Of a stretch of 64,000 nucleotides of DNA, positions 13,829 to 50,650 are shown in pieces. Positions within the stretch are counted from its first letter, which is position 1; each line of letters begins with the position of its first letter. Origin of the DNA: Basidiobolus meristosporus CBS 931.73 (Eukaryota > Fungi > Basidiobolomycota). Below the pieces are notes generated by a model. That model did no database searches and was not told the origin of the DNA. It saw only the letters and a list, made by a program, of their open reading frames with translations. The position numbers and the translations under genes were made by a program. The stretch covers positions 1-64,000 of the forward strand of contig MCFE01000219.1 of the NCBI GenBank assembly GCA_002104905.1, given 5' to 3'.

Positions 13829-16800
13829 CCTTGTGAAAAATAATTTGTTCCTGCAGATGGATCTAATCCAGATCAGCCATCAATATCCCATCAGGAGATC
13901 ATCAAATACCAGCAGCTTGGAATTGATAACCCTCAACATAATCTTATGAAAAGATCACAACAGTATTTGGCTAAGTTTTCTGCTAAATAAAGCTAAAAAC
14001 ATGACAGCGTTTGAGCGGTGTTTTGCCAAGGGTGGGATGGCATTGTTGTGGTCTTAGTTTGCTCTACAAATACTTGTGTGCATTTAACTGGCCAGTACAT
14101 CTAATTGCCTTATATGGCAAGAAACTTGATGGTGTTTTAACAGCCTTGTTGCAAGCCTCAGATGGCATTATAACAGTAGTATTGCAGCCTACAGCTAGTT
14201 CTGTATAATGCTACTGCACCAATTAACCAAATGGTATTTCCTTTTTCTACCTCCCCTTGAGTAACCCATCTATTCCACTGTGGAGTCACCCATCTTTATT
14301 GGCTTACCCACAACTACCTTAGGTATTTCACATATAGTTTGAATCAAAAGTTACTATGGCCTCCTGCTTACAGACCTCTTTATACACACACCTGCCACAA
14401 TTGACATACATCTATCACCGCAACTTTATGGCTTTTTCATGTGATACTTGCAAAGTTGTCATATACCTTGTATTGCTGGTAACATATTAATCTTGCAAAC
14501 ATATGCTTGATTGCAACCACCTTGGCCATGAATACCTCCTGAATATCTGCAAAGAGCTTCTTGGAGTTTAGCCAATATATTCCTTCTCCCTGCTGGATTC
14601 TAGTCCCCCTTATAGGTGTGCTCTGGCTCTTGTTTGTGTGAATTCTGTAATGAATGGTGTAGAAGTTGGCTTGTGAACAAGAGAAATCTGACATATCCTG
14701 GAAGAGTTTTCCTGATAAAAATTATCTGCTTGATGCACCCAGCCCAGCTTTGCATTACTTAACTGATGACCCACACATTGGAGCTGCTTAGCTACTAAAT
14801 GAAGTAGGCATAGGTGCCACCATGTGCACATCTGTCCTCCATATTGTCCAGCTCTTCCTAGCTGTCCATCTTGTGCCAACTCATCACATCCATGATGGAC
14901 TTGAAGGTAGTATTATTGATGAAATTGTGATGTGGTAGTACCAGCAACTTGACTTGTCTTAATATCTTCCCACTCATCTGCTCCATAGGAAACTTCAGAA
15001 AGGTGAAGCAGGGCTCAATATTCTCAATACACCAAGCCAGATGAGGTAGTAAATGGATACAGTAGTGGCAGAGATCTACACATTCAGCTTTATGTTTGTA
15101 GTATAGTCACTCAAATCCCATCACCAACTCTTGGCACAAAAGCTGTAGATGCATCAAGCTGGCATTAGTGATCCACTTATGGATAAATATTATAGCAATG
15201 TCCGCATTTGACTCCCAATGCTTCCAACATACTCTTGGAAGAAATGACTTTAGAGTGCAACTTATATAAATACACATCCAGTTCATCCAATCCTTGCACT
15301 TGTTTTGATGCATATGAGTAAGAATGTTGATTGGAGTCTATGAGAAGTACCAAGGATAGCAGATACTCTGTAATATGTTGCCAATTCTTTCAAATTTCTC
15401 CAATATCTCAATGTGCTCAATTAGCATGATATGCCCCATGTACAACTTGGTCATCTGTATAGGGATATTGTTGAAAAGCAAGTGTATTGCTTCCAATAGA
15501 AGGCCTTTGCTCCAATAGATACCCTCTTTCTTAAGTATCTCTGGTTTTGGACTAGTCCTGTTTTTCAGTCAATGGCCTATAACTTGCCAATCTTGCTGCA
15601 AATGAATGCTTACATATGTATGTTCTCTCTGTAGGAGGTTGATATTCTTAGTGTTAGTGTTTGGGTAATAATCATGTGTGTGGGTTATGTTGTAAATTCC
15701 ATGTATCTCACACATTTGGCAGCCATACCATCCATTGTGCCAAGAAAAGCCAGCAATCCTGCTGATGGCTGGAGTATCTCCAATGCAGATAATTGTATTT
15801 GCTTTGACAATATGGCCATCTATTAATATCCAGCTGTAAGGCACACAAAATTCATCCAGCAATGGATACAGATAGCTAGCCATGTTGGACAGTGATTTAG
15901 GCCCAGATACCAGCAAGACCACCATCAGATTTAGGTTCTGATACCATAAGATAGGCAGCAGATTCAGGTTGATGAGAATTGGTGGCCAGCAGGATTTGCT
16001 GGTGGATTACTTTTTTAATGAGAATCCATCAAGTGCCAAGGCTAAGGCATGATCATGAATACCTTCAGAGTAGCCCTTGCTTCTTAGCTATTTGTAACTT
16101 TTGCCATCAAATATACTGGCTCTATTTGCACTTGATTGATAGTGAGTGTGGTATTTTATAGCCTCTCAATATTTGTTAAACTGCATGAGCTTCTTTAAAA
16201 AGTATTACCAGAATATATCTGGAGTGTGAACAATGTTTCCCCCAATGGTGGTGGATTCTAGACAAGTGGACACCTTGCAATGGTGGCATTTTCTGATGGG
16301 AATGCTGTGCAACTGCTAACCCACAATGGTATCAGGATGGTCTCTGGGTCACTTGTTGCCAACCACATAATGGTTGTCCATTTATGCCATGTACATGGTA
16401 AGTTGCACCCCAGGATGATTTTGGCAACAAGTAGTAGTAAATCCTCAAAGCCCCCATTACTGATGTTAGTGGAAACTCACCTTCATATATATGCTGCCAA
16501 AAAATAAAGCAAAGTTGTCAGGTTCCCAATTAAACCCCACTGCTGACAGCTGCAGAAGAATGGTTAGACAACAGCTTGCTTGGCAATCAGTGCATCAAGC
16601 AGGGCTACAACCAAAAATGGCACTGTGTACTATGTGACCACTGAAGGTCATAATGCAGGCTCTCAGTCAAGTGGGCAAGTGACAATCACTGTGGAGTCTC
16701 AAGCTGACCATAATGCTGAGGCAGATGAGAATATTGCACAAGCAGTACATTCAGTTGAAGACCAGCAAGAGCCTGTTGTATCATCACCACCACCTGTATT

Positions 16801-20218: not shown

Positions 20219-22304
20219 TTACAAGACTATGGCATCCTGCTGACTAACTGTTACATATGTGCACACCTGCTGCAATTGACGTACTTTTATCACCTCAACT
20301 TTAAGGCTTTTTAGTGTGATACTTGCAAAGTTGCCATGTACCTTGTACTGCTGGTAGCATATACATCTTGTAAACATATGCTTGGTTGTTGCCACTTCTG
20401 CAATGAATACCTCCTGAATATTGGCAAAGAACCTCTTGGTATTTAGCCAATATATTCCTTCCCCCTGCTGGATTCTAGTACCCCTTATAGGTGTGCCCTG
20501 GCTTTTGTTTGTGTGAATTCTGTATTGAATGATGTATAAGTTGGCTTGTGACCACAAGAAATCTGGCATATCTTGGTGGAGTTTTCTTGATAAAAATTAG
20601 TTGCTTGTTGCACCCAACCCAACTTTGCATTACTTAACTGATTACCCACACATTGGGGCTGCTTAGCTTTGTTATGATCTGCCGCTTGAATGTTTAAGTT
20701 AGATCAGTTTTTAGTCAAATCAATTAGTATATGTTTAGGTTATCACTATATCAGTTTTATTTATGAAATCAGTAGCATTAGTCAGCAAATGAATCAGCAG
20801 ATCCTTATTAGACAGAAATAGATATATTAAGTAAGATCTTATTGGGTGATGATGATGCAATCAAATGAGTCATCAGCCACAACCTACATTAGGAAATACA
20901 ATTAGTCAGCAATAGATCTGGCAGAATGTATATAAGGAGCTGTTGGAACCTCAATAAAAATCAGTTCAAGTTTTAGTGAATACAATACTAGCTAAACTCC
21001 CTATTCCTCTACAACTCTTATACCAAGACTTGTAACAGCTTCTTAATACCACAAGCATTTGTGTCTCCATGTGCACATTTGTCCTCAGTATTTTCCAACT
21101 CTTTCTGGCTGTCCTCCATGTGCCAACTCATCACATCCATGACAGACTTGAAGGTAATATTCTTGATGAGATTGGGATATGGTAATACCTGCAACTTGAC
21201 TTGTCTTCCTATCTCCCTACACATCTGCTCTACAGGAAACTCCCAAAAGGTGAAGCAAGGCCTGATATTCTCCGCACTCCATGCAAGATGGAGTAGAGAA
21301 TGGAAACAGTAGTGGCGGAGATCTACACGTTCAGCTTTACGTTTGTAGTACAGTTGCTCAAATACCATTGCAAACTCCTCACACAACAGCTGTAGATGTG
21401 TCAAGTTGGCATTGGTTATCTGCTTCAGGATAAATATTCCTACAATGTCCACATATGACTCCCAATGCTTCCAATGTACTCTTGGTAGGAATGGCTTCAG
21501 AACACCACTTGAATAAATACATATCCAGTTCATCCAGTCTTTGCATTTGTATTGTTGCATATGCATATGAATATTAATTGGAGCCTGTGAGAAGTACTTA
21601 GGGTAGCAGATACTCTGTAATATCTTGCCAATTCTTTCAAATTTATCTGGTATCACAAAGGGCCCATTTAGCTTGAAGTGCCCCATGTACAACTTGATCA
21701 GTATAGGTATATTGTTGAAAAGCAAATGCATTGCTCACAGTGGAAAGCTTTTGCTCCAAGAGATACCCTCTATCTTAAGTATCTCTGGTTTCCAATTGAT
21801 TCCATATTCTGGCCAATGGCTTATAGCTTGCCAACTTTGCTGCAATTGCATACTTACTTCTGTATGTTCTCACTGTGGAAAGATGATATTCTTAGTGCTG
21901 GTGTTTGTGTAATAATAATATGTGTGAGTTATAGAGTGAATCCCCTGGATCTCACACATTTGACAGTAATACCGTCCATTGTGCCTGGAAGAACCTGCTA
22001 TCTTGCTGATGGCTGGGGTATCTCCAATGCAGATAATAATATGCGCTTTTACATGACGGCCATTTACTGTTATCCTGCTGGAAAGCATACAAAATTCATC
22101 CAGCAATGGATACAGGTAGCTATCCAGGTTGGATGGTGACTTAGGCCCAGATACCAGTGACACTACCATCAGATTATTGCTCTGATACTGTAAGATGGGT
22201 GGCAGATTCAGATTGATGAGAATCAGTGGCCAGCAGGATTTGCTGGTAGAGTACTTGCTTAATGAGAATCCATCAAGTGCTAAAGCAAAGGCATGGTCAT
22301 ACAT
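20219..22304 (-). pseudogene. Transposase_21 (tnp2) CACTA transposase, 5'-truncated, frameshifted and split by a solo LTR
   Basis: ALALDGFS...SCWPLILINLNLPP...VSGPKSPSNLDSYLYPLLDE...GDTPAISKIAG...C..C, and HSLLHLAW...PCFTFWEFPVEQ. Confidence 0.9.
20670..21037 (+). repeat. Solo LTR of the Gypsy family at 714-10367
   Basis: TGTTATG...TGTAACA with 4-bp TSD GCTT (20666-20669, 21038-21041). Confidence 0.95.
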
Positions 22305-22530
22305 ACCCTCAAAGTAGCCCTTGCTTCTAGGCTATTTGTAATGTTTTGGACAAGGAAGATATCCAAAAGATTATGGAAACTTTTGGCAAAGATGACGTTT
22401 ATGTTGCAAACTCTTTGTTTAGTGCTGTTACAAATGTTGCTGCCTTAAATAAATAATTGTTGTGTGCATGATCATATCAACTTTTGATTATTATACTTTT
22501 TAAAAAGTGTTTTTTATCAGATGTTAATAT

Positions 22531-23038
22531 TTTAGATCAAACATATCTTATATTAAACTTGAGCGTATAAAACTTTCTGGTTTAAAACAAACTTATCTTG
22601 GATCAAACCTAAACGTCTAAACCCGTTTTAAAACTAAATAACATATCTTATATTAAACTTGAGCGTATAAAACTTTTTTAACACAAACTTATCTTGGATC
22701 AAACCTAAACATCTAAACCTGTTTTAAAACATACTTATCTTGGATCAAACCTAAATGTCTAAACCTGTTTTAAAACAAACTAACTTATGTTAGATATAGC
22801 TCATCTTGGATCAAACTAACTAGCTTTTCTCATATTAAACTTGAGCGTATAAGACTGTTTTAAAACTAACTAAATCATCTTATATTAAACTTGAGCATAT
22901 AAAACTTTTTTAAAACTAACTAACTCATCTTATATTAAACTTAAGCGTTTAAAGCTAACTAACTCATCTCATATTAAGCTTGAGTGTATAAAACTTTCTG
23001 GTTTAAAACTAACTAACTCATCTTGGATCAAACCTAAA
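22531..23038. repeat. AT-rich array of two interleaved motifs
   Basis: TATTAAACTTGAGCGTATAA-like motif at 22551, 22651, 22833, 22883, 22933 and 22972. ATCTTGGATCAAAC at 22595, 22691, 22737, 22803 and 23020. Confidence 0.95.
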
Positions 23039-23119
23039 CTTCAATGCCTAGAATACTTCTGTCTTCCATGCCTACACCTTTTAAAAAATAACTTCTTACC
23101 TTCTTCAACCATTCCCCAT

Positions 23120-23827
23120 TTATGGATACCACACTATTGGCATTGTCTCCATCTCATATACCAACATCTCATTCACCCTTATAAATATATTCTCCTCCTC
23201 AAACTTTTTATCCAACCCATTCATATCCCCTATCTTCCCCACTTTTATCAAATACTTTGACCCTACGCAATCTTCTAAATTTATTGCATCCTTCCCTATT
23301 AATATCATTTCTATTCTCCCTCCCCTCTTCATATATATATACTTTGACAGCTCCCTTGTAAACTCTTCCCACAATATTCTATGATTCGCCAAAAATTTAT
23401 CACAATTCACCCCTACCATAAATCCTACGTTTATCATAAACACCCCCTGTGATACCCATTGTCTTAACATCTCTTTTGGCTCTGACATATCTACCTCATA
23501 CTCTAACCCTACTTTCTTTGCCATTAATATTGCCTCCATTGGATTCTTCCTACACTCCAATGACGGCATTAACCCTATCCCTAACGCATACTCTACCCCT
23601 GTCACATTACACGCACTATTATACGGCTCTTTACACACTATTACCACCTTTATCTTATCCGGTTCCATCAGTCTTAACATCCTAAACACATTTTTCTTCT
23701 TTGGCAACACTTCCAATTTTGACTCTTTTAACGTCTTTAATACTCTCCCCAGTATATCCATGATTTTCTCAAAAAATTCTTCCCACCCTTTTATCATCAT
23801 GAATATTCCACCTACCAAATCTTCCAT
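23120..23827 (-). CDS. Uracil-DNA glycosylase family-1-fold protein with degenerate catalytic motifs (~235 aa, intronless; probable ATG at 23827)
   Basis: Collinear UNG hallmarks VLP...VF, DKIKVVIVCKEPY, TG, MPSL, WVSQGVFMIN, H...WEEFT, MILIGKDA, F...N..L and PIVW. GQDPY is replaced by CKEPY and HPSP is absent. Confidence 0.85.
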   Translation of the reverse strand: MEDLVGGIFMMIKGWEEFFEKIMDILGRVLKTLKESKLEVLPKKKNVFRMLRLMEPDKIKVVIVCKEPYNSACNVTGVEYALGIGLMPSLECRKNPMEAILMAKKVGLEYEVDMSEPKEMLRQWVSQGVFMINVGFMVGVNCDKFLANHRILWEEFTRELSKYIYMKRGGRIEMILIGKDAINLEDCVGSKYLIKVGKIGDMNGLDKKFEEENIFIRVNEMLVYEMETMPIVWYP

Positions 23828-24180
23828 CCTTGATGACAAATATACCAAACTTTACCTCCAAAAACTTATCAATAATAATAATACCTCCGTTCTTGTTAAA
23901 AATAATATTATTTTTACCAACAAACAAAATCAAAACCTTTTTTATTTACTAAATTCCGTCAAAAATTCCTTTATACCAATGCACCCAATTTTTCTGCATC
24001 CACCACCAACAACGCCCTCTGCAAATACCACGGCGCCAACAACGTCCTCATCCTTGAATCTCAGCTCCGCTCTGCCGACAAAGGTAGCAACTTAGTCCAG
24101 TAAAGAGACTGCAAAGCTCACAAGAATCCAATCTAAGTTCTACAAGAAACTACCACTTTTCTGTTGGAAAAGTCCCCTCT

Positions 24181-24367
24181 AAGAAACCCCTTTACTCTTA
24201 AGACACCCATTAGAGACTCTTTTAAGAAGCCCCTTTAGGCACCCCTTTAGTGTAAAGTCCACTTTAGAGACCACTACAAGAAGCCCCTTTACTCTAAAGA
24301 CACCCCTTTAGACACCCCTTTTAGTCTTAAGACCCCTTTAGAGACTTCTACAACACACCCCTTTAGG
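24181..24367. repeat. Imperfect tandem array with ~8 CCCCTTTA units
   Basis: Read directly. Higher-order unit AAGAA(A/G)CCCCTTTACTCT(T/A)AAGACACCC. Confidence 0.9.
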
Positions 24368-24425: not shown

Positions 24426-24801
24426 AAGTTATATATATGAAAATTTTGAAGGATCAAAGTTTTTGGGTGATTGTGCAAGTAATACACGTGATACAAAGCT
24501 AAAATTATGCAGTGGCGCAGATCGGACATAGGCGCAGCATCTGTGAGAATTTCATGTGATATGATTGGCTGGTTTGAAAGTTACACACAATCAAAGTCAC
24601 CATAGTAATCCTAAAAGTTATATATATGAGAATTCTCAAGGATCAAAGTTTTTGGGCAATTGTGGAAGCAATACACGTGATACAAAGCTAAAATTATACA
24701 GTGGCGCAGATCAGACATAGGCGCAGCACCTGTGAGAATTTCATGTGATTTGATTGGCTGGTTTGAAAGTTATATGCAATCAAAGTTGCCATAGTAATCC
24801 T
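24426..24801. repeat. Two tandem copies of a 189-bp unit
   Basis: Copies start at 24426 and 24615. Each contains CACGTG, GTGGCGCAGATC and GATTGGCTGG. Confidence 0.95.
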
Positions 24802-25255
24802 TGCAATAATGCATAATATATAATAATTGGACTCTTTTGGTCATAACTCCTCAAGTACTGCTTCAAATGAGCTGCAATTTGAAACATGTGTTGACTGTTG
24901 TAAGAGTCTTGGAGATATTGGAAGTGATTGGGAGAACAAGTAGATTATGTGGTTTTCACTTAATGATTTATTGAATGTAAAAGTAGTATTTATACTTTTA
25001 CCTGGTCTTGGCATTACAAACACGTAGAATAGGTTAAGGAAGGTCCCAAGAACATGTGTGCAAAGTTTGGGGCTGTTTGGACAACTTTGAGAATTTTCAT
25101 GTTCTGGGTACCTGGTATTTTGGTGAAAATATTCTAAGTAAATCCCGACAAGGAATTTGGTCAGTATTTTCTAGGATTTGAAGGTAATGATCTAAGTGAC
25201 TAAGTTAGGTGAATATTTAGGTGGAAATACAAATTTTTACAACACTCCCACTCAG

Positions 25256-28200
25256 CTAAATGTTCATACTGACTAGTCCTAATTTTGACCTAAGATATTC
25301 AAACTTGTCTCTACCTAATGGTTTGGTAAATATGTCTGCAATCATTTCATCTGTAGGACAGTAAACTAAGCTAACTAAGTTACTCTCTATAGCTTCATGT
25401 ATGAAATGATGTCTAATATCTATGTGCTTGGTTCTAGCATGAAAAGTTGGATTTCTACCTAATTGTATACATCCTTGATTATCTTGAAATAAAGTAATAG
25501 GCGTTTTTTGACATAGGCCTAAATCTGTAAAGAGCTTTCTTAGCCACATTGCTTCTTTTGTAGCTTCACAGGCTGCCATATACTCTGCCTCTGTAGTAGA
25601 AAGTGCTACGGTTGGTTGCTTTCTTGAATTCCATGAAATTGCTCCTTTACAGTAAAGAAAGGTGTATCCTGTGGTGGATCTTCTGTCTTCTAAATTTTGT
25701 CCCCAATCAGCATCAGAGTATCCCACAAGATCCTGTTCTGAATCCTTATAAGTGTATCTTAAGCAGATATCAGCAGTTCCTTTTAGGTATCTAAAAATCC
25801 GCTTAACTGCTGCAATATGATCAGATCCATAATTCTGATTATGTTGGCTGACAACTCCGATGGCACCAAGCTCTCTTGATTTGGTTGAGTTTTGACCAAG
25901 TTAAGGTTTGTCTCCATTGGGGTAGCTGCCGGTTTACAGTCTTCCATTTTGTACTTCTTTAGTATATCTTGAATATACTTGGATTGGCTTAGGGTAATAG
26001 TCTGGGTACTTCTGTCTATGGAGAACTTAATCCCTAAGTAGTAACTGAGTTCTCCTAGATCGGACATCTTGAACTCCTTAGATAGGCTGGATTTAGTCTC
26101 TTCCAATGTTTCCAGGTTATTGGTGGCTATAATAAGATCATCCACATATAGAGCTAATAGAACTGGATTTGCTCTATCTGGCTTATAGTATATACTATAG
26201 TCAGCATTACTCCTTTTGAAACTCAAAGATTCCAAATAAGAATCTATCTTGCAATTCCAGGCTCTTGGTGATTGTTTGAGACCATATAGTGACTTTGTAA
26301 GCTTGCAGACCAAATGGGGGTTATCTTGGTCAACAAACCCATCAGGCTGGTCCATATACATGTCCTCATCAAGTTCTCCATTCAAAAATGCAGTTTTTAC
26401 ATCCATTTGATGAATAAAAAACTTATATTTGGCTGCAATAGCCAATATTAATCTGATGGAATTAAACTTGGCTACCGGTGCAAAGGTCTCAGTATAGTCA
26501 AGTCCTTTTGTTTGAGAGTATCCTTTGGCTACAAGTCTTGCTTTGTATCTTTCAATTGTACCATCAGCCTTGTACTTTGTCTTGAAGACCCATCTGCATC
26601 CAATTGATTTTTGGTTGATTGGTAATTTGACTAAGTCCCAAGTTTGATTTTCCATCAGGGCCTGATATTCCTCAGTCATTGCAGATCTCCAAAACTTTGT
26701 CTGAGGGCTATTTAGGGCCTCTTTTACAGTCTGGGGTTCATCAATATGGACTGAATAGGCATAGGCTAAGTTTGTACCCTCATTGATATAGTAATTTGGG
26801 CTATTTCTTGTCCAATTGGATCTCCGGGCATTTGATACTGGAATGATCACTTCTGGGATATTCCTGGGCACTGATTCTGGCTGAACCACGGTTGTAGAGT
26901 CCTCTGGAGTGAAAAAATTCTCATTGTTTTGCTCTGATTCAATCCTGACAATTGGTGGACTTGAGATCAAATTTTCGTCATCATCTGATGTCATTTTTTG
27001 TGAAAATTTTGAATATTCATCAAACAACACATCCCTGGACTTGATCAGCTTCTTTGCTTTGGTATTGTAGAGTCTGTATGCCTTACTCTCATTGCAGTAG
27101 CCCAAAAATATGCATTTTACACTTTTTGGCTCAAATTTTGACTGATTTCCGGCCAGTTTTTTGGCATATGCTGTACACCCAAATATTCTTAGATGTTCTG
27201 CACTTGGTCTGTATCCATACCATGCTTCAAATGGAGTAGAATCACGAAGTATTCTGTTATAACTCTTATTTTTAAGATATACAGCAGTGGCAACTGATTC
27301 CACCCAAAAATCATAGGATAATTTTTGATCATGGATCATAGATCTTGCCATATCAATTATTGATCTGTTAGCTTGTTCTGCTACTCCATTTTGCTGTGGG
27401 GAGTATGGTACAGTAGTCTCTTGCTTTATCCCATGAATTTTGCAGAAGTGGATGAAGAGTTTTGAGGTATATTCTCCACCATTGTCAGAGCATATTTTCT
27501 TGATTTTTTCACCAGTTTCTCTCTCCACCATGGCTTTAAACTCCCTGAACTTAGACAGAGCTTCTTCCTTTCTCTCCACAAAGTAGACCCATGTGTATCT
27601 TGTATAATCATCAATAAAAGTGATTAAATACTTCATCCCGCTGTGGTGGTGTATAAGTCCAAGGGAGAGATACGTCCAACACTTCTCAAGTGTTTTGTGT
27701 GTGGGGTGTTCACTGGGTGCGATAACCTCTGGCAAAAGCTTGCTAGGAATACTTGGGTTCTGTCTCTAATCTAATGTGAAGGGGAATAAAGCCACAAGCT
27801 TGTCAAGGGAAAACTATTGAGCTACAATCCCCAACTTAGTTGGCGTCTTAACAAAAGTATGTGCTGGGTTCAGCGTCCTTTGAGATGACAATGTACTAAA
27901 GCTTCCAAAGTCAAAACAACTGTAAACTCCACCAGCAGGGACTTGATAAGAATGCAGCTTTGGTCAATAGTTACAAAGACAGAAAAGTATCTTTGCCTGT
28001 ACAAGAACAAACTTGGGAAAGAATCAAATATAATAAAAGATACCTACTCTGAGTATTCCTCACAAGTAGTGCCTCCAAGGTCAGTTGGCTGTCAGCGCGG
28101 TTTCCTGGGAGTGTCCTGTGGTCTAGGGTTGGAAGTTCAGGTAGCAGCAGGTAGCAGTGATCACACTAATCAACAAGTTGGTATATTGATAAAAGGGATG

Positions 28201-30214
28201 ATGATTTATTGTTGAGGGATAGCCTCCCTTATATACTTTTCTTACTGGCTAAGTGATTACTAATCATGGTGTTCCAGAAGGTTCCAGAGATCAATAGAAA
28301 TCTTAATGACATCAGAATGACCTAAGAATGTTCTAAGTAGGTGCCGGAAGGTTCTAAGAGGCACAGCACATCCGACCAATCAGGAATCAGTATTCTGAAA
28401 CCTGTGTAACATGGGGATACCATATATGGTATGGAAATGGTAGGGATGGTAACACGGGCTGATCATGTGTCATGGGTACTGGCGCGGGTACTTGCCTAAT
28501 ATAGAAGTACTTATAGCTAGTAATCTTACATAAAGTGAGGGTTAACTTATGCAATAAGGTAAGCAGGTGTGATAGTCAACCGGCTTATGGGATAGTACTG
28601 ATTGGGTAAGACAAATGGGATAAAACTAAAATAAGTGTAGTAGAGATATAGGGAAGTAGAAAATAAGGGAATGAGCACATCTGTCAGTGGGTGTCACTGT
28701 CACCCCACTACACCGCCAAGGATAAATTTTGCATAGGTCCACACAGATCTGAGTGAATTAGATCTAATTTTTTCTTAGTTTTGATTAACCCAGAGCTCTT
28801 GAATGGTTGTCTGGCTTGTTTCCCATATATGCAGGCTTCACAGTGCTCCAAATTAGCTGGGGGATCAATTTTCACTCCAGAAATTAGCTGATCTTTGATC
28901 ATTTTACGCAAATAATCAAAATTGATGTGTCCAAGTCTCCTGTGCCAAAGCATTGGTGTTTCTTCATTTAAGTTACTTATATTGGCTTCCAGATATGATG
29001 GAATATAAGTCAACTTGTATAGATTCTGATCTCTGATGCCCAAAGCAATATGAGCACCATTTTGATCAGTGATCTGCATCCAGAATTGTCAAAACTGAAA
29101 CTGAGTCCTTCTGCTGTGGCCTTGCTTACAGAGAGTAGGTTCTTGGCTATTTCTGGTACATAGAGTACTTCTTTAAAGGTCAGTGTATGGCTTCCTTCAC
29201 TGCTTCTTAAGGTTTACTTGGATAGTTCCTTCTCCCACTGCATCAAGTGTTCTATTGTCACCCATGAAAACCTTCTTAATTGGAATTTCTTGATATTGGG
29301 TAAAAAGTTCTTTTTGGTGTGTAAAGTGTTGAGAAGCTCCAGAGTCAATATACCACGTCTGAGAATCCTTGTTTGTGGTCATATTTAGTGCAGATATGAA
29401 TAGTCTATCTTCAGTTGTTGCAGCATTTCCATATTCAGGCTTCTTTTGCTGATAATCTCTCTTTTTGAAACACCGGTCTGATGTGTGTCCTTTCCTTTTG
29501 CAGTAGTTGCAAAATAGGTTGCTGTTGCCTTTGTAGGGTCTTGGGTACCTCCTTTGTTGGTTATCATTGCTTATTAAAGCATTTTCTTCTTCCTTCTTAT
29601 TGGCGCTTGATTTTCTTAATTCTTCATCCAGGAGCCTTCCATATACGTAATTTAAGGTCAAATCTTCAGTTCTGGACTCTAGGGCTGATACAAGGCCCTG
29701 AAACCTGTCTGTCAGGCTATTCAGGATGGTAACTATCACATCCTCATCAGTAGTTGGTACGCCCACAGATTCCATCTCATCTACCAGCAGGGTAATTCTG
29801 TTAATTAGATTTTTCATTTCTTCTCCTGGCAGCATCTTTGTAGTAAAGAATTTTCTTCTCAGATACATTTTCTTGGCAGCTGAACATGACTGGTAGGTGT
29901 CTTCTAATGCTTTCCAGGCATTCTTTGCCTGTTTTTGCTCTTGAGCATTGAATTAGCAATTTGTCCTTGACATTAAGGCAAATGCAGTTAAAGGCACTTT
30001 GTTCTTTCTTCTGGTACTTCAAGGCTTCCTCTCCCACGTTTTTAGGAGGGCATTCTTCTCCTATGACAATATCCCAAAGGCCTCTTTCTTGCAGCAGCAT
30101 CTTCATCTTCACCTTCCACACTTGGTAGTTAGATCCATCCAACTTTTCAGCAGAGGGAAAAATTCCAGTAATAGCAGTAGTAGACATTGCAGAGAGTGAC
30201 AGCTTGGGGCTCAT
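25256..30214 (-). pseudogene. Copia family 2 gag-pol (gag frameshift, solo-LTR insertion in integrase, deletion in the RT-RNase H linker)
   Basis: LDGSNYQVWKVKM, CNYCKRKGHTSDRC, WYIDSGAS, HSDLCGP, FIDDYTRY, SDNGGEY, MDVKTAFLNG, LYVDD, YSDADWG, ADIFTKPL. Confidence 0.95.
27642..28712. repeat. 1071-bp solo LTR (or LTR-like insertion) of an unrelated family
   Basis: TGTGGTGG...CCACTACA termini with 4-bp TSD CCGC (27638-27641, 28713-28716). The Copia integrase rejoins across it. Confidence 0.88.
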
Positions 30215-30758
30215 AACCTGTTGTAAGAGTCTTGGAGATATTGGAAGTGATTGGGAGAACAAGTAGATTATGTGGTTTTCACTTAATGATTTTTTGAATG
30301 TAAAAGTAGTATTTATACTTTTACCTGGTCTTGGCATTACAAACACGTAGAATAGGTTAAGGAAGGTCCCAAGAACATGTGTACAAAGTTTGGGGCTGTT
30401 TGGACAACTTTGAGAATTTTCATGCTCTGGGTACCTGGTATTTTGGTGAAAATATTCTAAGTAAATCCCGACAAGGAATTTGGTCAGTATTTTCTAGGAT
30501 TTGAAGGTAATGATCTAAGTGACTAAGTTAGGTGAATATTTAGGTGGAAATACAAATTTTTACAACATTGACTACTATGTGTTCTGTATGACATAACATT
30601 CTTGGGTGAATTGCATGTCTGGGTCTGGAGCATTTGTCCTTCAAAGTTGGAAATTCTTGATCTTTCACTTGTGTGTTACAATAGCAAAAAGCAAAATAAT
30701 GAAATGAGTGCAATATTGGTTCAGAGATATTGTAGTAATGGAATACTTTCCATTACCA

Positions 30759-31790: not shown

Positions 31791-34400
31791 GGAAGTAAAG
31801 GCTACTTTCAAAGTATGTATGACCATGCTTTTGTCTTGGTACTTGATGAGTTCTCATTAAACAAGTACTCTGCCAGCAAATTCTGCTAGCCACTGATTAT
31901 CTTCAACCTAACTCTGCTGCCAATCTTGCAGCATCAGAACAGAAATCGGATGGTATTTTCACTGATATCTAAGGCCAATCATTATTGAATCAGGATAGCT
32001 ACTTGAATCCATTGCTAGATGTGTTTTGTATGCTATCCAGCAGAATACTAGTTAACAACTATCAACTCAAAGTTTGTATTATTACCTGCATTGGATATAC
32101 CATGGCCTTAAGTAAGATGGCCAGCTTTTCTGGGCACAATGGATGGTATTGCTGTCAATTGTGCAAGATCCAGGGGATTTATTCCATAATTCACACATTA
32201 TTATTATCCCACCACCAATACTGAGAGCATCATCTTCTCACAAAGAGAACTGACAGAAGTCAGCGTGCAATTGCTGCAAAGCTGGCAACTATAAGCCATT
32301 GATCAGAATATGGAATTAATCAAAACCAGGGTGTCATGATCACATGACAATCATGAACACCCATGCCAAGTTTCAGCTTCATAGCTCAATTTCTAAGAGA
32401 TTCCTTCTGGAACCTTCTACCACCTTCAAGAAAGTTCCTGACCCTTCCAAACCACTGTTACACAATGGAACATTCCATGGAAGCTTCCCATTGTATTTTT
32501 CATAGTCCAGTACCATATATGGAAATACCAGGTCACATGACTTAGTCACATGATCAGGTGACCTAATCCACTTCCCCATCCTGTCTCAGTGCCGTGTCAT
32601 CTATGTCATTATCCCCAGCACCATTGCTGTGCCTCACCCCACAACCCCATTAGTATTAGCCAATATCTCTTGGCATCAGTATAACAAAAAAAGTGTATAT
32701 AGTCCTATCCCCCCTTAAGTATTCCTCAGTCTGATAAACACAGGTCTTGAATAAACAGCCTTGCCTTGAATCCTGCCTTGCCTTGATGGTCCACACCTAA
32801 GTTCTTTCCTGCCATGCCTAGCTTTTCCTCCTGCCTTGTGTCTATTCATTACACAGGGACACTAAAGATAGTAGGAATCTGTTGCAGCAAGAGCTTCCCA
32901 TTGGGAGCAATGCATTTGCTCTTCAACAATACATATGTTAGGACTGTATGATCTGGATATTTATTGATTTAAGTGGCCTTCTGAAGCTATTTCTGCCCTA
33001 AGTACATTGGAAGCTTTAGCAGTCATATGTAAACATTGTAGGAATATCTATCCCAAAGCAGATCACCAATGTCAACTTGGCCCATTTGGAGCTTTTATGT
33101 AAGGAGTTCTTGACAGGGTTTGGGCAGCCATACCACTGGAATAAAGCTAACCATGTAGATCTCTACCACTACTGCATCCATTCTTGACTCCATCTTGCTT
33201 GGTGTGTGGAGAATACTGGACCTTGCTTCACTCTTTAGGAGTTTTCTATGAAGTGGATGTGAGGAGAGATAAGATGTGGAGTCAAGTTGCAAGTTCTACC
33301 ATATCCCAAACTCTTCAGAACATAACCTTAAAGTCTGTCATCAATGTGTTCAGTTAGCATGTGAATGACAGCCAGAAAGAATTAGATAATACTGAGGGCA
33401 GATGTGCACATGGACACACCTATGCCTTAAACATTAAGAAGCTAAGAAGCCCCAATGCATTGGTAATCAGTTAAGCAATGCAAAGTTCAGTTGGATGCAA
33501 CTAGCAGCAAATACCTATTAGGACAACTTTACTAATGTATGCCAGGCTCCTCCTGGGTACCAGTTGATTTCTATATCATTCAATATGGAATTCATTCAAA
33601 CAAGAGCCAGAGCATACCCATTAAGGGGACTAGGATTCAGCAGGGAGAAGGAATATATTTGCCAAGTACCAAAAAAACTTGTAAATATTCAAGAGGTATT
33701 TATGGCAAAAGTGGTGGCACCAAGCATATGCTTGCAAGATGTTTATGTTACCTATAATACAAGGTATATGGTAACTTGGCAAGTATCACATGGAAAAGCC
33801 ATAAAGTTGAGGTGATAGAAGCATGTCAATTGCAGCAGGTGTGCACATATGTAGCAGTTAGTCAGCAGGATGCCATAGTCTTTTTAATTCAAGCTCTGTG
33901 TGGAATGCCAACAACAGTAGTGGGTAAGCAAATAGATTAGGGTGATTCTATAATGAGATATATGAATGTTACTAGGGGGTGGCAAAAGGAAAAACTATTT
34001 GGTAAACTGGTACAGTAGCATTATACAGTACTAGCTGTAGGCTGCCATGCTGCTGGTATAATGCTAACTGATGTCCAAATCAAGGCTGTCAAAATGCCAT
34101 TAAGTTTTTTTCCATATAGGGAATATGCAAATACTGGCTGGTTGGGTCCAGTCAAATAAGTGTAAGCTGCAATATGACTGTTAGAATGCCATTTAAATCC
34201 CATTGAAGAACCACCTAAACTCTGTTAAGTTTACTAACCTATTTGGCAGTAAAATCAGTAAAACACTGCCACAATCCCATCATAAGATTGTTAGGAGGGT
34301 CATTAGTTTCAAACTGTTGGTATTATCACAGCCCCATTGCAGGATCTTAATATCTGCTCCAGATTGGATCTACCTGCAAGACAAGTAATTTTTCATAGGG
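31791..34400 (+). mobile_element. Remainder of the host CACTA copy: tnp2 fragments, 3' region and type A terminus
   Basis: Homologous to the reverse complement of 19852-22330. Ends GTAATTTTTCATAGGG at 34400. Confidence 0.8.
32332..32853 (+). repeat. 522-bp solo LTR of a third family
   Basis: TGTCA...TTACA termini with 5-bp TSD CAGGG (32327-32331, 32854-32858). tnp2 homology rejoins across it. TATA-like GTATATAG and AATAAA inside. Confidence 0.85.
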
Positions 34401-36365
34401 TTTGAGGAAAGTATTCCACCATTGTCAGGGCTTATTTTCTTGATTCTTTTCACCAGCTTTTCTTTCCGTTATGACTTTAAGCTCCCCAAGCCTAGATAGT
34501 GCTTCTAATTTTCTTTCCAGGAAGTAGACTCAAATGTGTCTGGTACAATATCAATAAATGTGATTAAACACTTCATTCTACCAATGGACAAATTTTGCAT
34601 AGGTCAACACAGATCTGGGTAAGTTAGATTAGTTTTCTTTGTAGTCTTGAATAACCCAGAGCTATTGAACAGTTGTCTGGCTTGTTTCCCATTTATGCAG
34701 GCTTCACAGTGCTCAAAATTAGCAGAGGGAGCAATTTTTACTCCAGAAGTTAGCTGATATTCAACCATCTGGTGCAAATAATAAAAATTTATGTCCAAAT
34801 CTCCTGTGCCAAAGCTTTGGTGTTACTTTGTTCAAGTTACCTATATTGGCTTCCAGACATGATGGAATATAAGCTAACCTGTACAGATTCTGATCTGTGA
34901 CACCCAAAGCAATATGAACATCATTTTGATCAGTGATTCTGCATGCAAAATTGTCAAAACTAAATTGATTTATTTGGCTGTTGCCTTGCCTATGGATAGC
35001 AGATTCTTGGCTATTTCTGGTACATGGAGTACTTCTTGGAAGGTAAATATGTTGCTTCCTTCACTACTTCCAAGGTTTACTTGAATAGTTGAACTGTTCT
35101 ATCATCACCCATGAAAACCTTTTCAAATAGAGTTACTTGATATTGGGCAAAAAGTTCACTTTGGTGTGTAAAGTGTGAAGATGCTCCAGAGTCAACATAC
35201 CACCTCTGAGACTGCTTGTTTGTGCGCATTTTTAGTGCAAATATTACTATTCTATCCTCACCTGTTGCAGTATTTCAATATTCAGGCTTTTTCTGCTGAT
35301 TGACTTTCTTTTAGAGCAGCAGTTTGATGGGTGTCCTTTCCTTTTGCTGTAGCTGCAATAAAGTTGATGTTGCCTTTAAAGGGTCTTGAGTACCTCCTTT
35401 GCTGGTTATCATTGCTTATTAGAGCATTTTCTGCTTCCTTCTTATTTGCACTGGATTTTCTTAATTACTCATCAAGGAGCCTCCCATATATATAATTCAA
35501 GATCAAGTTTTCAGTTCTGGGCACTATGGCTGATACAAGGCCCAGAAATCTGTCTGTCAGGCTATTCAGTAGGGTAACTATCACATCTTCATCAGTAGTT
35601 GATATGCCCACTGATTTCATCACCCCACCCAACAGTGTAGTTTTATTAATGAAATTTCTCATTTCTTCTCCTGGCAGCATCTTTGTAGTAAGGGATTTTT
35701 GTCTGAGATACAATTTCTTAGCATCTGAACATGACTGGTAGGTGTCATCCAATGCCTCCCAGACACTCTTTACCATTTTTGCTCTTGAGCATTGATTAGC
35801 AATTTGTCTTTAGCATTAAAGCAAATGCAGTAAAGGACACTTTGTTCTTTGTTCAGGTACTTTAAGTCATCCTTTCCCACGTTTTTAGGAGGGCATTCTT
35901 CTCCTATGACAATATCCCAAAGGCCTCTTTCTTGTAGCAGCATCTTCATCTTCATCTTCATCTTCAACTTCCACACTTGGTAGTTAGATCCATCCAACTT
36001 TTCAGCAAAGGGAAAAATTCCAGTAATAACAGTAGTAGACATTGCAGAGAGTGACAGCTTGGGGCTCATGACCTGTTGTAAGAGTCTTGGAAATATTGGA
36101 AGTGATTGGGAGAACAAGTAGATTATGTGGTTCTCACCTAATGATTAATTGAATGTACAAGTAGTATTTATATTTTTACATGGTCTTGGCATAACAAACA
36201 TGAAGAATAGGTTAAGGAAGGTTCCAAGAACATGTGTGCAAAGTTTGGGGCTGTTTGGACAACTTTGAGAATTTTCATGTTCTGGGTACCTGGTATTTTG
36301 GTGAAAATATTCTAAGTAAATCCCGACAAGGAATTTGGTCAGTATTCTCTAGGATATGAAGGTAA
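34401..36365 (-). mobile_element. Older truncated copy of Copia family 2 (partial LTR 36074-36365, gag, protease, start of integrase)
   Basis: Collinear with 27460-27640 and 28713-30510. PBS GGTCATGAGCCCC at 36061-36073. Cut off exactly at the CACTA terminus at 34400. Confidence 0.9.
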
Positions 36366-36870
36366 TAATCAATCCAAGATGCTGTGTGCAAAGTTTGGAG
36401 GCTTTTACACAAGCTTGAGAGCATTAATAACTTCCTGACCTTCACTAATTCTAAGAATAAGCTAATATCTTACAAACTAAATCTTAGATAAATAATTCAT
36501 ATCTTGGCAATAACCTAGGTAGAATTTGATGTTATGTGCATGGTTTAGGTGTAAACTAAATACCTAAAACACTTCCCAGCTAAATTCTTTCCAGGACCTA
36601 TACAGAGTGTTTTAGCTGTCTTCACTTGCCAATTTAGGGGAGTAAACTAGTATACTTTTATATCATGGCATACAGTCAAACACTCGAATCAATACACTTT
36701 TGTTACTACAGATATATGCTGTTTAACTTTGTGGTTGTATACCAAATTTTCAAATGGTTATTGTGCAAAGAATCGATCGCAGGCTAATGAAATATCACGT
36801 GTACTCGCTCGTTAACATATATATATATATCTTGACTAAGCCCGAAGAAACCTGCGGAGTATGCTTGAAA

Positions 36871-41865: not shown

Positions 41866-44800
41866 ATGTCAGATCCTGTCTCCCCAAATAAGGGATCCCA
41901 TATTTCTATCCCAATCAGCCCACCGAAGGATTTGAACACTCCCAGCTCATCTTATACTTCTGCTGTCTCGTATGGTGCAAGCTTCAAAAGAGGTGGTTTG
42001 CCGCGTCCATGTTTTTCTTCTTCAGGAGAGGGAACTGCTGGTAATGTGCCGTCCAAGACGTACTATGTTCTACACAATGGAAATTAATACCTTCATTATA
42101 GCGAGCCCCTCTAGGTCGTTTCCCGCTTCTGTAATCCGCTCCCAGTCTTTAGCATTGGGAAATATCGCTCTACAGGAGGAGGAGGAAGATTCTACAGAGG
42201 GTCAAATTCAGAGTAACCTCTCGTTATTACTCAACTCTACTAGTGAAGAGAATCACGACTCTCACAACAAACCCGATGAGGAGCATCGTCGGAGTGAAAG
42301 CTCTTCAATGGCGCCCTCCAGAAAGAGTTCCTTCGATTCCTTGCGAAAGCGCCTTAGTTTCTCCTCTGCACATGCCTCTGAAAATACCGCATTGTTGAAC
42401 AACTCTACTACTCAAGCCTATGTCGGTCGAAGTGAACGTTCTAAGGGTCATTTACGCATGGTAGGTGGTTTTGATACACATCTCTATCGAGCCATTGTAA
42501 GTTCAAACGAATTAACGCAAATCTTGTTTTTCAACAGCCAAATGAAAGCTTAAAGGACTTACTGTTAAAGCCAGTGTACTGCATCCCTGCAGTGGTTCTG
42601 GGTTTGATCCTCAATCTGTTAGACGGAATGTCATATGGTAGGCCTGGATCATCATAAAGTTCACATTGTGCAAGTGTCGCTAACCTCTTCATATCAGGAC
42701 TAATCAGTTTCCCGCTCTCTTCCCCAATTTTCGAGAAGTTTGGGCCTGATGGTTTATCCATGTTCCTCATAAGGTTTGGGGTTTTAATCTTTCTGCTACA
42801 TCAGGGATATCTAACCGATGTTTTTTAGTACTGCAATTTGCCAAGTGGTCATGTCTACGGCTAGTGGATTTAGAGGAGGGAATGGTAGCATGATGATCGA
42901 AGGTATTGCTGATGCTTATTGGACTGTTGATCGTACGATATTAATATGTTTGTTTTTCTAGTCATCCCATTCTTATATCTGATGTAGGCGACAAGTATCT
43001 AGGATCTAGTGTGAGATTATCCTAATATGTTTCTATAGGTGCGATATTATCATCAAAGATTTGGGCGAAGACAATCCAACCGCGGTTATTGCTACAGTTA
43101 TGGTAACCTATGCCATTAGCTCGATGGTGACTGGTATAGCGTTCTTGCTTCTTGGCATTTTCAAGGTGAGCATTGACGGTAGGATCGGCTTGTGTACTGC
43201 CTCTAACCAGTAAATGATAGCTTGGATCGCTTGTCGAGTTTTTCCCCAGACATATTCTTGTTGGGTGTATCGGTAAGAAAGTTAGCCAGTTACTTTCTCT
43301 ACTGCGTCGACTAATGCTTTTCTTATTCATACAGGTGGTGTGGGGTACTTCTTGATCCAAACTGCCATTGAAGTTTGTGGCCAAGTTCAATTACATGCAG
43401 ATTGGGACACAATTGTCTCATTGTTTGAATGGCACACACTCTTACTGTGGTCTTCCAGTCTGCTTTTAGCATTGCTTTTGAGAGCAATGGAGAGAAAGAT
43501 CGAGCATCCTATGTTTGTGCCATGCTTCTTTATGGTTGTCCCGATTCTGTTTTATGCTGTGGTCTTTTTCGGCGGATTTGATTTGGAAGAGCTTAGAAAA
43601 AGTGGATGGCTTTTCCCATTGCCTGATTCCAGCGTTCCATTCTATGACTTCTATACCCGTTTTGGTATATCCTTTATCGAATTACGCTCTTATTAGGCTC
43701 ACACTAACGCACGACTGACTGTAGATTTCTCTCAAACAAGCTGGTACTCGATTGTAAAAACAATCCCTGCGATGTTATCCCTCACCTTCTTCGGTATATT
43801 TGTGCCGCAGACACCACTTAACTTTCGTTATTATTAACAATGTGATCCTAGGTATTCTTCACGTACCCATTAACGTTCCTGCTTTGGCTGTCTCTACCAA
43901 CGAAGATAGCATCGACACAAACCGAGAGTTAATTTGTCATGGAGTTGCGAACTTTTTGTCAGGAGCTGCCGGATCCTTCCAAAGTATGCCATCCTGAAAT
44001 CATCTGCGAATCGATTCGTGTGTCCTAATCATACTTTCCTAGATTACTTGGTATACTCTAACAGTATTCTCTTCATCCGCTCTGGAGGTGATAGCCGACT
44101 TGCCGGTTACATGCTTGCAGGTGCCACCATGATCGTGTTCTTTATGGGACCTCAAATTGTTGGATACATCCCAGTGATGGTCGTTGGAAGCTTAATATAC
44201 CATCTCGGCTTTGAGTTGATGAAAGAGGCTGTTCTCGATACCCTAGGCATTGTGCATCCATTGGAGTATTTCACCATATGGGCGATTGTAGTTGGAATGG
44301 CTGCTTTGGGATTCGTTGAAGGTATCTTCCTCGGCATTTTATTGGGATGCATATTTTTCGTTGTCACGTATAGCACACGAAACCCAATTAGACATACATA
44401 CACTGGGGTTACCGCCAAGAGTACCATCCGTAGATTGTATCGCCAAAGAAAATTCCTTGACCAAGTTGGCGCACAGATTCAAGTATTGAAATTGCAAGGA
44501 TTCATGTTTTTCGGCACCATCAACTCGGTGGAGGCTAGCATAAGGGAGCTACTCTCGAAGCATCAATGGGAGATGAACCCTATCAGGTTTTTGATTCTTG
44601 ACTTTCACCTTGTGAACGGGATCGATTTCAGTGCCGCTGAAGCATTCGTGCGTGTCAGGAGATTGTTGAAGGCCAAGGACATTTATATGGTCATTAGCGG
44701 AGTGAGCTATCACTCGGATCTGGGCAAGGCTTTGCGTGGAGTTAGAATATGGGGTAATGACGAGGAGGACGACATTCAAAACTTTGACCATCTAAACGAA

Positions 44801-45463
44801 GCACTGGAATGGTGTGAAAACTTCTTACTGCAGACGTACTATAAGAACAAATCCCATTCTGTAGAGCCCAAGAAGAGAAATATCGACATTATTGAGACGC
44901 AACGCCAGGAGACATCTCCCGCTTTAGACAACTCCCTTGTTTCAGTTCGCCAGATGCATCTTTATGAGGCTGCTAACAACGCTCTGCAAGGAGAGAGCCA
45001 TGCCTACACCAATTTCCCTCAGCCTCTGGCTCTGCTTTTACAGGCATTCCAAGAGATCTCCGGCTCTAATGAAGAGTTTCTCTTCCGTCTTAGCTCACAC
45101 TTTGTACAGTGGGAGGTAGGCCAAGGCACTGTAGTTTGGGCACAGGGAGATGAGCCAGAGGCATTGTTTCTTGTGGAACAAGGTCTTTTACGAATGAATG
45201 TTGAAAAGGCCAACGCTACAAAGGTCGTCGAGTCGGTTTTGCCTGGTACCATGGTTGGCGAGCTTGGATTCTTCTCCCTAAGACCCAGAGGTAGCACCTT
45301 AGTCGCCGAACGGGATTCAGTTTTATGGAAGCTCTCCAAAGCAGAGTTCGAAAAATTATGCGAGGAAGACCCCGCGTTAACGGTGAAGTTTATGAGGCTT
45401 GCTTTGGCTTACTCTGCTGAGGGACTGAAGACTATGACCACTCACGCCTTCCATTTGATATGA
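41866..45463 (+). CDS. VSB1: SulP/SLC26-family transporter with STAS and cyclic-nucleotide-binding domains (Vsb1/YGR125W-like), multi-exon
   Basis: [27 protein letters not shown] region [13 protein letters not shown]...[18 protein letters not shown]-terminal cNMP fold [11 protein letters not shown]...R. The orthologue name is inferred from domain architecture. Confidence 0.88.
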
Positions 45464-50373: not shown

Positions 50374-50650
50374 ACCCTCGGATGCCATTGGTCCAATTGC
50401 TTTTATAATAAACAAACGCCACATCAGACAGCCCTCCACATAACAATACTGTGGTTCTATGAATATCCCTTGAATCATATAGATATGCATCGATGCAGCC
50501 TGAAGATTGGCGGCGTGGCAAGTGGGAGGAGTCCAGTTTCAACCGATTTTATTTTCAGCTCAATGCTGACGAGATAATCCCGCCATATCACATATAATAT
50601 CAACATATATACACTGACCAATTCCTACATCGCCTCTTCTCAACACTAGA

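Follow-up and report, generated by a model that had tools for sequence, protein, structure and literature searches.

How a gene for a UNG-like protein with a rewired active site came to lie, with its reading frame intact, among the transposons of a fungal chromosome is the question raised by a locus of Basidiobolus meristosporus CBS 931.73. The window analyzed here is the whole stretch of 64,000 nucleotides at positions 1 to 64,000 of contig MCFE01000219.1 (assembly GCA_002104905.1), and the UNG-like open reading frame (ORF) occupies 23120..23827 on its minus strand, with 235 codons and a TAA stop (ATG at 23827, stop at 23120-23122). A first-pass annotation, made from the letters of the DNA, had proposed a pseudo-enzyme of the UNG fold that keeps its frame. 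The answer toward which we lean, with moderate confidence, is a recently endogenized, lone giant-virus gene for a probably non-catalytic UNG-fold protein.

Assignment of the protein to its family draws on profile, sequence and structure comparisons. A Pfam scan of the window gave no UDG match at E ≤ 1 (PF03167 was not among the matches), and a word-indexed search of 5.8 billion proteins found nothing for the UNG-like protein. The NCBIfam ung models align to residues 17-233 at E 2e-19, with scores below the curated cut-offs, which run from 143 to 237 bits in these models (including TIGR00628 and PRK05254): the highest NCBIfam score reaches 70.3 bits where 162 is required, and TIGR00628 gives 68.8 against 185.75. 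When PDB sequences were searched with phmmer, mimivirus UNG (5x55, 6lyd, 6lye) was matched at E 7e-13 to about 1e-12, and bacterial, herpesviral and human UNGs followed at E 1e-7 to 1e-2, those of E. coli and HSV at about 1e-7. An AlphaFold2 model built from 117 aligned relatives has a mean pLDDT (predicted local distance difference test) of 95.4 and a pTM (predicted template modeling score) of 0.91, a confidence that comes from the alignment. Foldseek searches with this model gave 122 matches in the PDB at E ≤ 0.001, of which the best 50 are all UNGs (TM-score 0.71-0.80, about 0.8 to human, E. coli and mimivirus UNG), and against BFVD the top folds are giant-virus UDGs, from Solivirus, Pithovirus LCPAC, an entomopoxvirus and Megaviridae. 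Judged by these matches the protein is a full-length, very divergent family-1 UNG homolog, and the predicted structure upholds the UDG α/β fold; the first-pass proposal of a UNG fold is thereby supported by the structure search.

The mechanical ORF call begins upstream, at a TTG at 23848 (242 codons); similarity to relatives starts near Trp15, and alternative starts are available at ATG 23800 and ATG 23797 (Met10 and Met11). When the body of the ORF was shuffled 20,000 times (mononucleotide), the shuffled sequences carried a mean of 22.3 in-frame stops and a minimum of 7, against none in the actual sequence, and the remaining two sense frames hold 41 and 16 stops. The frame is thus open far above chance, all the more so because the A, G and T in which the locus is rich are the letters of stop codons, and the roughly 235 stop-free codons recorded in the first-pass annotation stand. 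The ORF is open in the standard code, all four Trp codons being TGG and in-frame TGA being absent. Antisense to it (plus strand, 23050-23685), one frame has a single stop over 708 nt, a by-product of the G-poor plus strand; an overlapping gene there was rejected, since the frame has nearly no start codons and its product is a low-complexity run of Leu, Pro, Thr, Ser and Tyr.

Active-site motifs were defined by the five-motif set quoted in the mimivirus UNG paper (PMC5538708), and E. coli Ung (from NC_000913) was included in the alignment as the reference. One of the five canonical motifs is intact in this copy and four are changed; the Asn and Tyr of the pocket are kept. The equivalent of the water-activating loop, canonically GQDPY, is C-K-E-P-Y (residues 65-69; 23621..23635, minus strand), with G62C, Q63K and D64E relative to E. 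coli Ung, so that the catalytic Asp is replaced by Glu while the Pro and Tyr69 are kept. The GLAF equivalent is G-I-G-L (residues 83-86; 23570..23581, minus strand), in which the uracil-stacking Phe has become Leu86. The Pro-rich loop (PPPPS; PVPKS in mimivirus) reads K-N-P-M-E, PPS having become PME, and Glu98 or Met97 takes the place of its Ser, according to which alignment is used; the Gly-Ser loop has changed from GS to G178-K179 (mimivirus has GA here). The uracil-recognition strand, canonically LLLN, is F-M-I-N (residues 130-133; 23429..23440, minus strand), the same as in mimivirus UNG, and keeps Asn133. The equivalent of the intercalation loop H-P-S-P-L is K-I-G-D-M (residues 198-202; 23222..23236, minus strand), the loop as a whole reading K198-I199-G200-D201-M202-N203 against HPSPLS, with the catalytic His lost. 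The first-pass annotation had thus been right about the Asp-to-Glu change from GQDPY to CKEPY, about the exchange of HPSPLS for KIGD with loss of the His, and about the retained recognition Asn and loop Tyr. Its reading of GLAF as GVEY was a misalignment, and its statement that all structural motifs are present went too far, the Pro-rich loop being altered too, as is the Gly-Ser loop. Across 116 relatives, 41 columns are at least 75% conserved, of which the UNG-like protein keeps 29 and changes 12. The changes are clustered, falling in 11 of 21 functional-motif columns and 1 of 20 scaffold columns (Fisher p 0.0014, with the partition into motif and scaffold columns made post hoc, after the data had been seen), and several of the 12 are conservative (Leu to Met, Ile to Met, Phe to Leu).

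The relatives themselves are viral in their genomic company. Scanning 1.84 billion cluster representatives in full with HMMER yielded 1394 matches at E ≤ 1e-3, the best at E 3e-32 and 34% identity, with no close relative and none bearing a fungal name; a scan of IMG/VR with the UNG-like protein likewise gave no close relative. The nearest relatives, a metagenomic clade (P0001-P0035), match the UNG-like protein in length, at 30-36% identity. A maximum-likelihood tree of 75 sequences places the window protein inside a 33-member clade with an SH-like approximate likelihood ratio test (SH-aLRT) support of 98, and its terminal branch (0.96) is not much longer than the clade median (0.76). Eight relative-bearing contigs were inspected for neighboring genes, and seven are gene-dense, with giant-virus hallmark genes beside the UNG-like gene: Rpb5 at L001; a D5-like primase and TFIIS at L006; PolB and kinases at L002-L004, PolB in L002 being two genes away; and Rpb1, Rpb2, Rpb5, TFIIS and a SNF2 helicase at L009-L011. 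The eighth contig (L012/L013, P0288) has no recognizable neighbor gene. The UNG-like gene of the clade often adjoins Rpb5 and TFIIS (L009, L010, L006). Pithovirus-like endogenous PolB genes of nucleocytoplasmic large DNA viruses (NCLDVs) are described in the literature from both B. meristosporus and B. heterosporus (PMC7017919), and such elements in Basidiobolus fit the BFVD ranking, in which the UDGs of Solivirus and Pithovirus come first. Judged from its relatives, the gene is giant-virus-derived and not a cellular UNG rewired in place.

Departure from the canonical active site is a habit of this viral clade and not unique to the fungal copy, since the relatives themselves deviate from it. 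The clade carries a GQ[S/D]PY loop and typically HP[VA]xR in place of HPSPL in the intercalation loop, where an Arg is also present in vaccinia D4 (PMC5538708); a literature search found no paper on the GQSPY motif in UNGs. At the position of the catalytic Asp, the 33 members have Ser in 15, Asp in 10, Glu in four, Asn in two and Lys and Tyr in one each, and the catalytic His is kept by 25 but missing or exchanged in eight; outside the clade, 72 of 84 sequences have the Asp and 79 of 84 the His. The uracil-stacking Phe is found in 27 of the 33 and in 79 of the 84, and every member of the clade has the pocket Asn and Tyr (33/33). P0004 and P0005 are variants in which the His loop is missing; viral contigs carry them in the midst of RNA-polymerase genes, and the P0005 cluster has 13 members from several metagenomes. 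Three further clade members have Glu for Asp, all with His, so the Asp-to-Glu change alone is no mark of a pseudo-enzyme; among the combinations seen, that of the window copy, with Glu and with neither the His nor the stacking Phe, goes furthest. The most economical inference is that these viruses would conserve the clade protein for a task other than classical uracil hydrolysis. For the first-pass idea of a pseudo-enzyme made by rewiring, the fold, the frame and the replacement of catalytic and DNA-contact residues hold up, and the rewiring itself turns out to be largely a property of the viral clade. The other outcome it had considered, homologs that keep GQDPY and HPSP beside a neutrally decaying copy, is not what was found, the nearest relatives already having GQSPY and HP[VA]xR.

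The base composition of the gene provides a separate line of evidence. An extreme shortage of cytosine on the sense strand is the most unusual trait of the locus, and one that the first-pass annotation had passed over. The ORF lies in the sole compositional island of its kind in the window (22450..24000), where the minus strand holds 4-9% C (the plus strand being G-poor), and a weaker C skew extends to about 24350. The sense strand of the ORF is 5.9% C (5.9%, 10.2% and 1.7% by codon position), and its 66 fourfold-degenerate sites have A in 31, G in 34, T in one and C in none. Ile is encoded by ATA 19 times, by ATC once and never by ATT; Arg codons are all AGR; and Leu is TTR 19 times against CTG three times. 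Where a twofold codon must end in a pyrimidine (Asp, Asn, Phe, Tyr, Cys, His), 44 such codons are kept, 41 of them with T. Third-position pyrimidines accordingly stand at 2 of 86 sites where their removal would be synonymous and at 44 of 119 where it would change the amino acid (Fisher p 4e-10), and all codons but two are at the single-step synonymous optimum for purine content. Avoidable C is still present at 13 places, and Ser is TCA six times against AGT once. The composition of the protein has been dragged along by the base skew, with Met at 8.1% (2.9% in relatives), Glu at 11.1% (6.2%) and Lys at 10.2% (7.5%), and with Ser, Thr, Pro, His and Gln depleted. The non-coding flanks of the island are C-poor yet T-rich. 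A pattern so aware of codons implies purifying selection at the level of the protein while the bias acted, for long enough to saturate the synonymous sites; it shows that the coding sequence was long under purifying selection while a strong drive purged pyrimidines, above all C, from its sense strand.

Most of the causes that might be proposed for such a skew were rejected. Deamination of C to T, as in repeat-induced point mutation (RIP) or by APOBEC-like enzymes, would leave T, which occupies only the single fourfold site noted above. Local mutation of the genome fails because the substitution spectrum of the window's three Transposase_21 copies is symmetric and because the host and transposable-element ORFs are balanced; the same ordinary composition and balanced third positions of the window's host ORFs dispose of host codon preference. 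Bisulfite, base-calling or assembly artefacts would not track codon degeneracy as this pattern does, and a synthetic C-free or recoded cassette would not contain the avoidable C or the excess of TCA over AGT. An origin in a mitochondrion or other organelle is contradicted by the standard code, with its four TGG Trp codons and absence of in-frame TGA. Transposon cargo was rejected since no terminal inverted repeats surround the island and the ends of the copia and Transposase_21 elements lie outside it. Nor is the skew a trait of the known viral relatives, for none of 15 genes from nine related viral contigs is skewed. Two candidates remain: (a) a donor genome or element with a purine drive, followed by recent entry, and (b) a locus-specific, transcription-coupled process in the fungus, for which there is precedent in yeast, where Ung1- and transcription-dependent T>G changes arise on the non-transcribed strand via abasic sites and Rev1 (PMC6420880). 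The T-rich flanks argue against (b) and, in part, against any single drive acting on both the ORF and its flanks.

On the reading that we favor, the gene would be the single-gene remnant of a giant virus (Nucleocytoviricota) inside a Basidiobolus transposon nest, and its source would be a viral clade that often abandons canonical glycosylase chemistry (Asp to Ser, Glu or Asn; HP[VA]xR; repeated loss of His). This copy would have gone furthest, keeping the scaffold and the pocket Asn and Tyr and giving up the His, the stacking Phe and the Ser of both the Pro-rich and the Gly-Ser loops. From these residues we infer that the protein probably no longer excises uracil at UNG-like rates and may at most bind DNA or a flipped base. 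The purine-drive regime would have belonged to the donor genome or element, and integration into the fungus would be recent, because fungal DNA mutates symmetrically and the codon pattern is nearly unblemished: a few per cent of divergence under symmetric fungal mutation would already restore pyrimidines at fourfold sites. If integration was recent, the intact frame requires no function in the fungus.

Several points weigh against this reading of a recent viral relic. No viral gene survives beside the ORF to prove a larger integrated virus, and no viral domain was found in any other ORF of at least 150 residues in the window, which covers 64 kb of a 124-kb contig. No donor of such composition is known, so the donor regime is itself a deduction and not an observation, and recency would follow solely from the cleanness of the codon pattern. 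Because the flanks of the island are T-rich, one mutational drive fails to explain both them and the ORF. Loss of activity is read from residues alone, and Glu keeps a carboxylate, while relatives with Ser may be enzymes that act differently. The structural model is no proof that this exact sequence folds.

The alternative that survives best, although we think it unlikely, is that the fungus keeps the viral UNG fold as a domesticated pseudo-enzyme whose role would be non-catalytic: it might bind uracil or abasic sites, for example, or titrate a partner. The skew would then have arisen in place under heavy transcription, with abasic sites bypassed by Rev1-type insertion of deoxycytidine monophosphate, giving T>G and C>G. 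The intact frame and codon-aware pattern, which show selection on the protein, are what domestication would produce, as is the concentration of changes in catalytic and DNA-contact motifs with the scaffold spared; the skewed unit, at about 1.6-1.9 kb, is as long as a single transcript, a change of third-position pyrimidines to G is in keeping with the surplus of Met, Glu and Lys, and the yeast process described above (PMC6420880) acts on the same strand. Set against these are the absence of the gene, as a predicted protein, from both protein searches, its place in a transposon nest, the unskewed host genes of the window, and the T-richness of the flanks, presumably untranslated regions, which is unexpected if T>G spanned the whole transcript. 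To our knowledge, no natural gene has been driven so far by transcription-associated mutagenesis, which also counts against domestication. The roles offered in the first-pass annotation, a decoy for Ugi-type factors or a shield over lesions, are speculative.

It is less likely still that the protein remains an enzyme of altered chemistry or specificity, in which Glu67 would serve as general base, Lys198 or other residues would stabilize the leaving group, and the Ser-bearing relatives would likewise be catalytic. In favor of this, Glu preserves a carboxylate where the Asp would be, the invariance of the pocket Asn and Tyr (33/33) suggests a continuing importance of base recognition, many viral genomes conserve the clade, and mimivirus UNG, the closest solved structure, is active despite unusual loops (PMC5538708). 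[quoted passage not shown] In E. coli and human UNG, mutants of the Asp and the His show that each single loss costs orders of magnitude in rate.

Decay and artefact carry little weight even when taken together. A neutrally decaying pseudogene, open by luck and with an active site that is odd through damage, could be suspected of a lone gene among transposons that has no annotated product and many replaced catalytic residues; it is very improbable given that the composition predicts 22 stops where none is present, that synonymous sites are saturated with purines while amino-acid-changing third positions are held (p 4e-10), that only 1 of 20 scaffold columns has changed, and that the terminal branch (0.96) is close to the clade median (0.76). 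An artefact would mean that C had been converted, chemically or in base calling, that the locus is a contaminant, or that a recoded synthetic insert was sequenced; the strand-specific near-absence of one base would be the expected sign of conversion chemistry or of a designed cassette. It is hardly credible when codon degeneracy is respected, as no sequencing artefact could do, when conversion of C would have put T at the fourfold sites, where just one T is present, when 13 avoidable C and Ser codons of TCA (six) over AGT (one) speak against a C-free design, and when the island abuts a transposon terminus at one end, with a copia element and its target duplication about 0.5-0.9 kb past the skewed stretch at the other.

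A wider possibility, which we rate as rather unlikely, is that the locus records a regime not yet described: either an unknown giant virus or mobile element with genes that have next to no sense-strand C and no pyrimidine there that could be spared, or saturated transcription-coupled bypass of abasic sites at a fungal locus for a domesticated, non-catalytic UNG-fold protein that would still recognize a flipped base. In either case, the GQSPY/HP[VA]xR clade would be a new class of UNG-fold proteins that recognize a base without canonical hydrolysis.

The chromosomal setting of the gene is that of a transposon-rich region bordered by host genes. Over its first 42 kb (1-42 kb) the window is a nest made up of Ty3/gypsy, Ty1/copia and Transposase_21 (KDZ/CACTA-like) elements, and the remainder (42-64 kb) holds intron-poor host genes, 18-40 kb from the UNG-like gene. 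To the left of the gene lies a decayed Transposase_21 (KDZ/CACTA-like) copy (20262..22341, minus strand), whose terminus at 22341 bounds the island and is common to the copies at 14387-16097 (at 16097) and 31792-33882 (inverted, at 31792). The three decayed Transposase_21 (tnp2) copies are 78-83% identical, and those at 20262-22341 and 31792-33882 face each other across the island and the copia element. Differences among the copies (C>T 82, G>A 88, A>G 90, T>C 87; 347 transitions and 206 transversions in all) show no RIP-like bias. To the right lies a Ty1/copia element (24895..30567, minus strand) with 350-nt long terminal repeats (LTRs) at 24895-25244 and 30218-30567 and TG...CA ends; its LTRs are 99.1% identical and it has a 5-bp target duplication, TTGAC, so that it is a recent insertion. 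The first-pass statement that the neighboring transposon ORFs are broken holds for the Transposase_21 fragments at 21018-22304. Young though its LTRs are, this copia has its gag and its pol each divided between two ORFs, and a third copy of its LTR, 95% identical, is found at 36073-36370.

Repeats adjoin the ORF on both sides. On its 3' side a degenerate tandem array of about ten 46-50-nt units, with a 96-nt higher-order unit (22531..23050), is A+T-rich and C-poor on the sense strand; on its 5' side lie dispersed TAAAGGGG-type G-tract repeats (24167..24367, minus strand), and between the island and the copia LTR a tandem duplication of 2 x 187 nt, 91% identical (24426..24801). Rfam and tRNA scans of the window were empty, and tblastn found no second copy of the UNG-like gene. 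The gene is embedded in the host chromosome, as its Transposase_21 neighbor, the copia with its target duplication and host genes syntenic with B. ranarum indicate. The order of a SulP-STAS-cNMP transporter, an EST1/PIN (SMG6-like) gene and a KpsF-like gene (43934-51643) is kept in B. ranarum JASJQH010000036.1 (L007); the syntenic 21 kb of B. ranarum hold no UNG-like sequence, but this stretch ends short of the equivalent position.

Two further observations concern host genes. The KpsF/GutQ-type arabinose-5-phosphate isomerase gene at 50651-51643 (minus strand) is intronless and encodes an SIS and two CBS domains; its product is 82% identical to that of B. ranarum and 71% to a B. meristosporus protein, and outside Basidiobolus, Paraglomus, Jimgerdemannia and Ambispora its best matches are metagenomic or bacterial, at 50-57% identity, the named ones being Bdellovibrionota. 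From these matches it looks like an old bacterial acquisition common to early-diverging fungi. An Aa_trans amino-acid transporter at 58419-60222 (plus strand) is split between two overlapping ORFs in different frames, which points to an intron or a frameshift.

Among known systems, mimivirus UNG (L249; PDB 5x55, 6lyd, 6lye) is the best solved-structure match by both sequence and fold, and it shares with the window protein the FMIN strand and a Cys-containing insertion after the PY of the water-activating loop. It differs in keeping GQDPYP and HPSPY, in being active on single-stranded DNA (PMC5538708) and in having a long N-domain and an extra motif-I, both absent here, and identity is about 23-30%. 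The GQ[S/D]PY/HP[VA]xR giant-virus clade, in which the window protein is nested, has the same departures from Asp and repeated loss of His; unlike the window gene, its members lie in compact viral contigs of ordinary composition, and most keep the His, the Phe and the intercalation-loop Arg that are lost here. Poxvirus D4 (vaccinia UNG) likewise combines a family-1 UNG fold with a structural, catalysis-independent role, as the processivity subunit of a polymerase, in a large DNA virus. D4 keeps its catalytic Asp and His and is an active glycosylase (PMC10253040). Its role needs the partners A20 and E9, and neither an A20-like bridge nor a family-B polymerase is encoded in the window; D4 is also not among the PDB sequence matches, and the poxviruses are represented only by an entomopoxvirus UDG in the fold search against BFVD. 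The analogy with D4 drawn in the first-pass annotation, though no more than an analogy, is reasonable for the viral clade; a lone copy in a fungal chromosome would have no obvious partner.

Two further comparisons concern the virus and the skew. The "fundsalphavirus" Pithovirus-like NCLDV elements (Gong et al., 2020; PMC7017919) are giant-virus DNA in the same fungi, B. meristosporus and B. heterosporus; they were found via PolB only and often carry stops or frameshifts, whereas here one UNG-like gene is intact and no PolB is nearby. Mutagenesis to T>G through Ung1, abasic sites and Rev1 in yeast (Kim and Jinks-Robertson; reviewed in PMC6420880) resembles the present pattern in changing pyrimidines of the non-transcribed strand to G within one transcription unit. 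It is unlike it in consisting of rare events in reporter genes of repair mutants, never the saturation of a natural gene, and it leaves the T-rich flanks unexplained.

Should the ORF be no more than what a peculiar virus recently left behind, it would matter little in practice. The codon-aware purge of pyrimidines is the part most worth following: the compositional regime could be matched to no described genome or mutational process, and, if our reading holds, the purge would be an internal proof of purifying selection in a gene without a close homolog. The Basidiobolus copy would then also be a non-PolB addition to the sparse record of giant-virus DNA in non-zoosporic fungi. For the family, it would mean that a sizeable giant-virus clade of UNG-like proteins has dispensed with the catalytic Asp and in some cases with the His too, while the Asn and Tyr of the pocket persist in every member, and that the idea embodied in D4, use of the UNG fold for a purpose other than repair, would reach well beyond the poxviruses.

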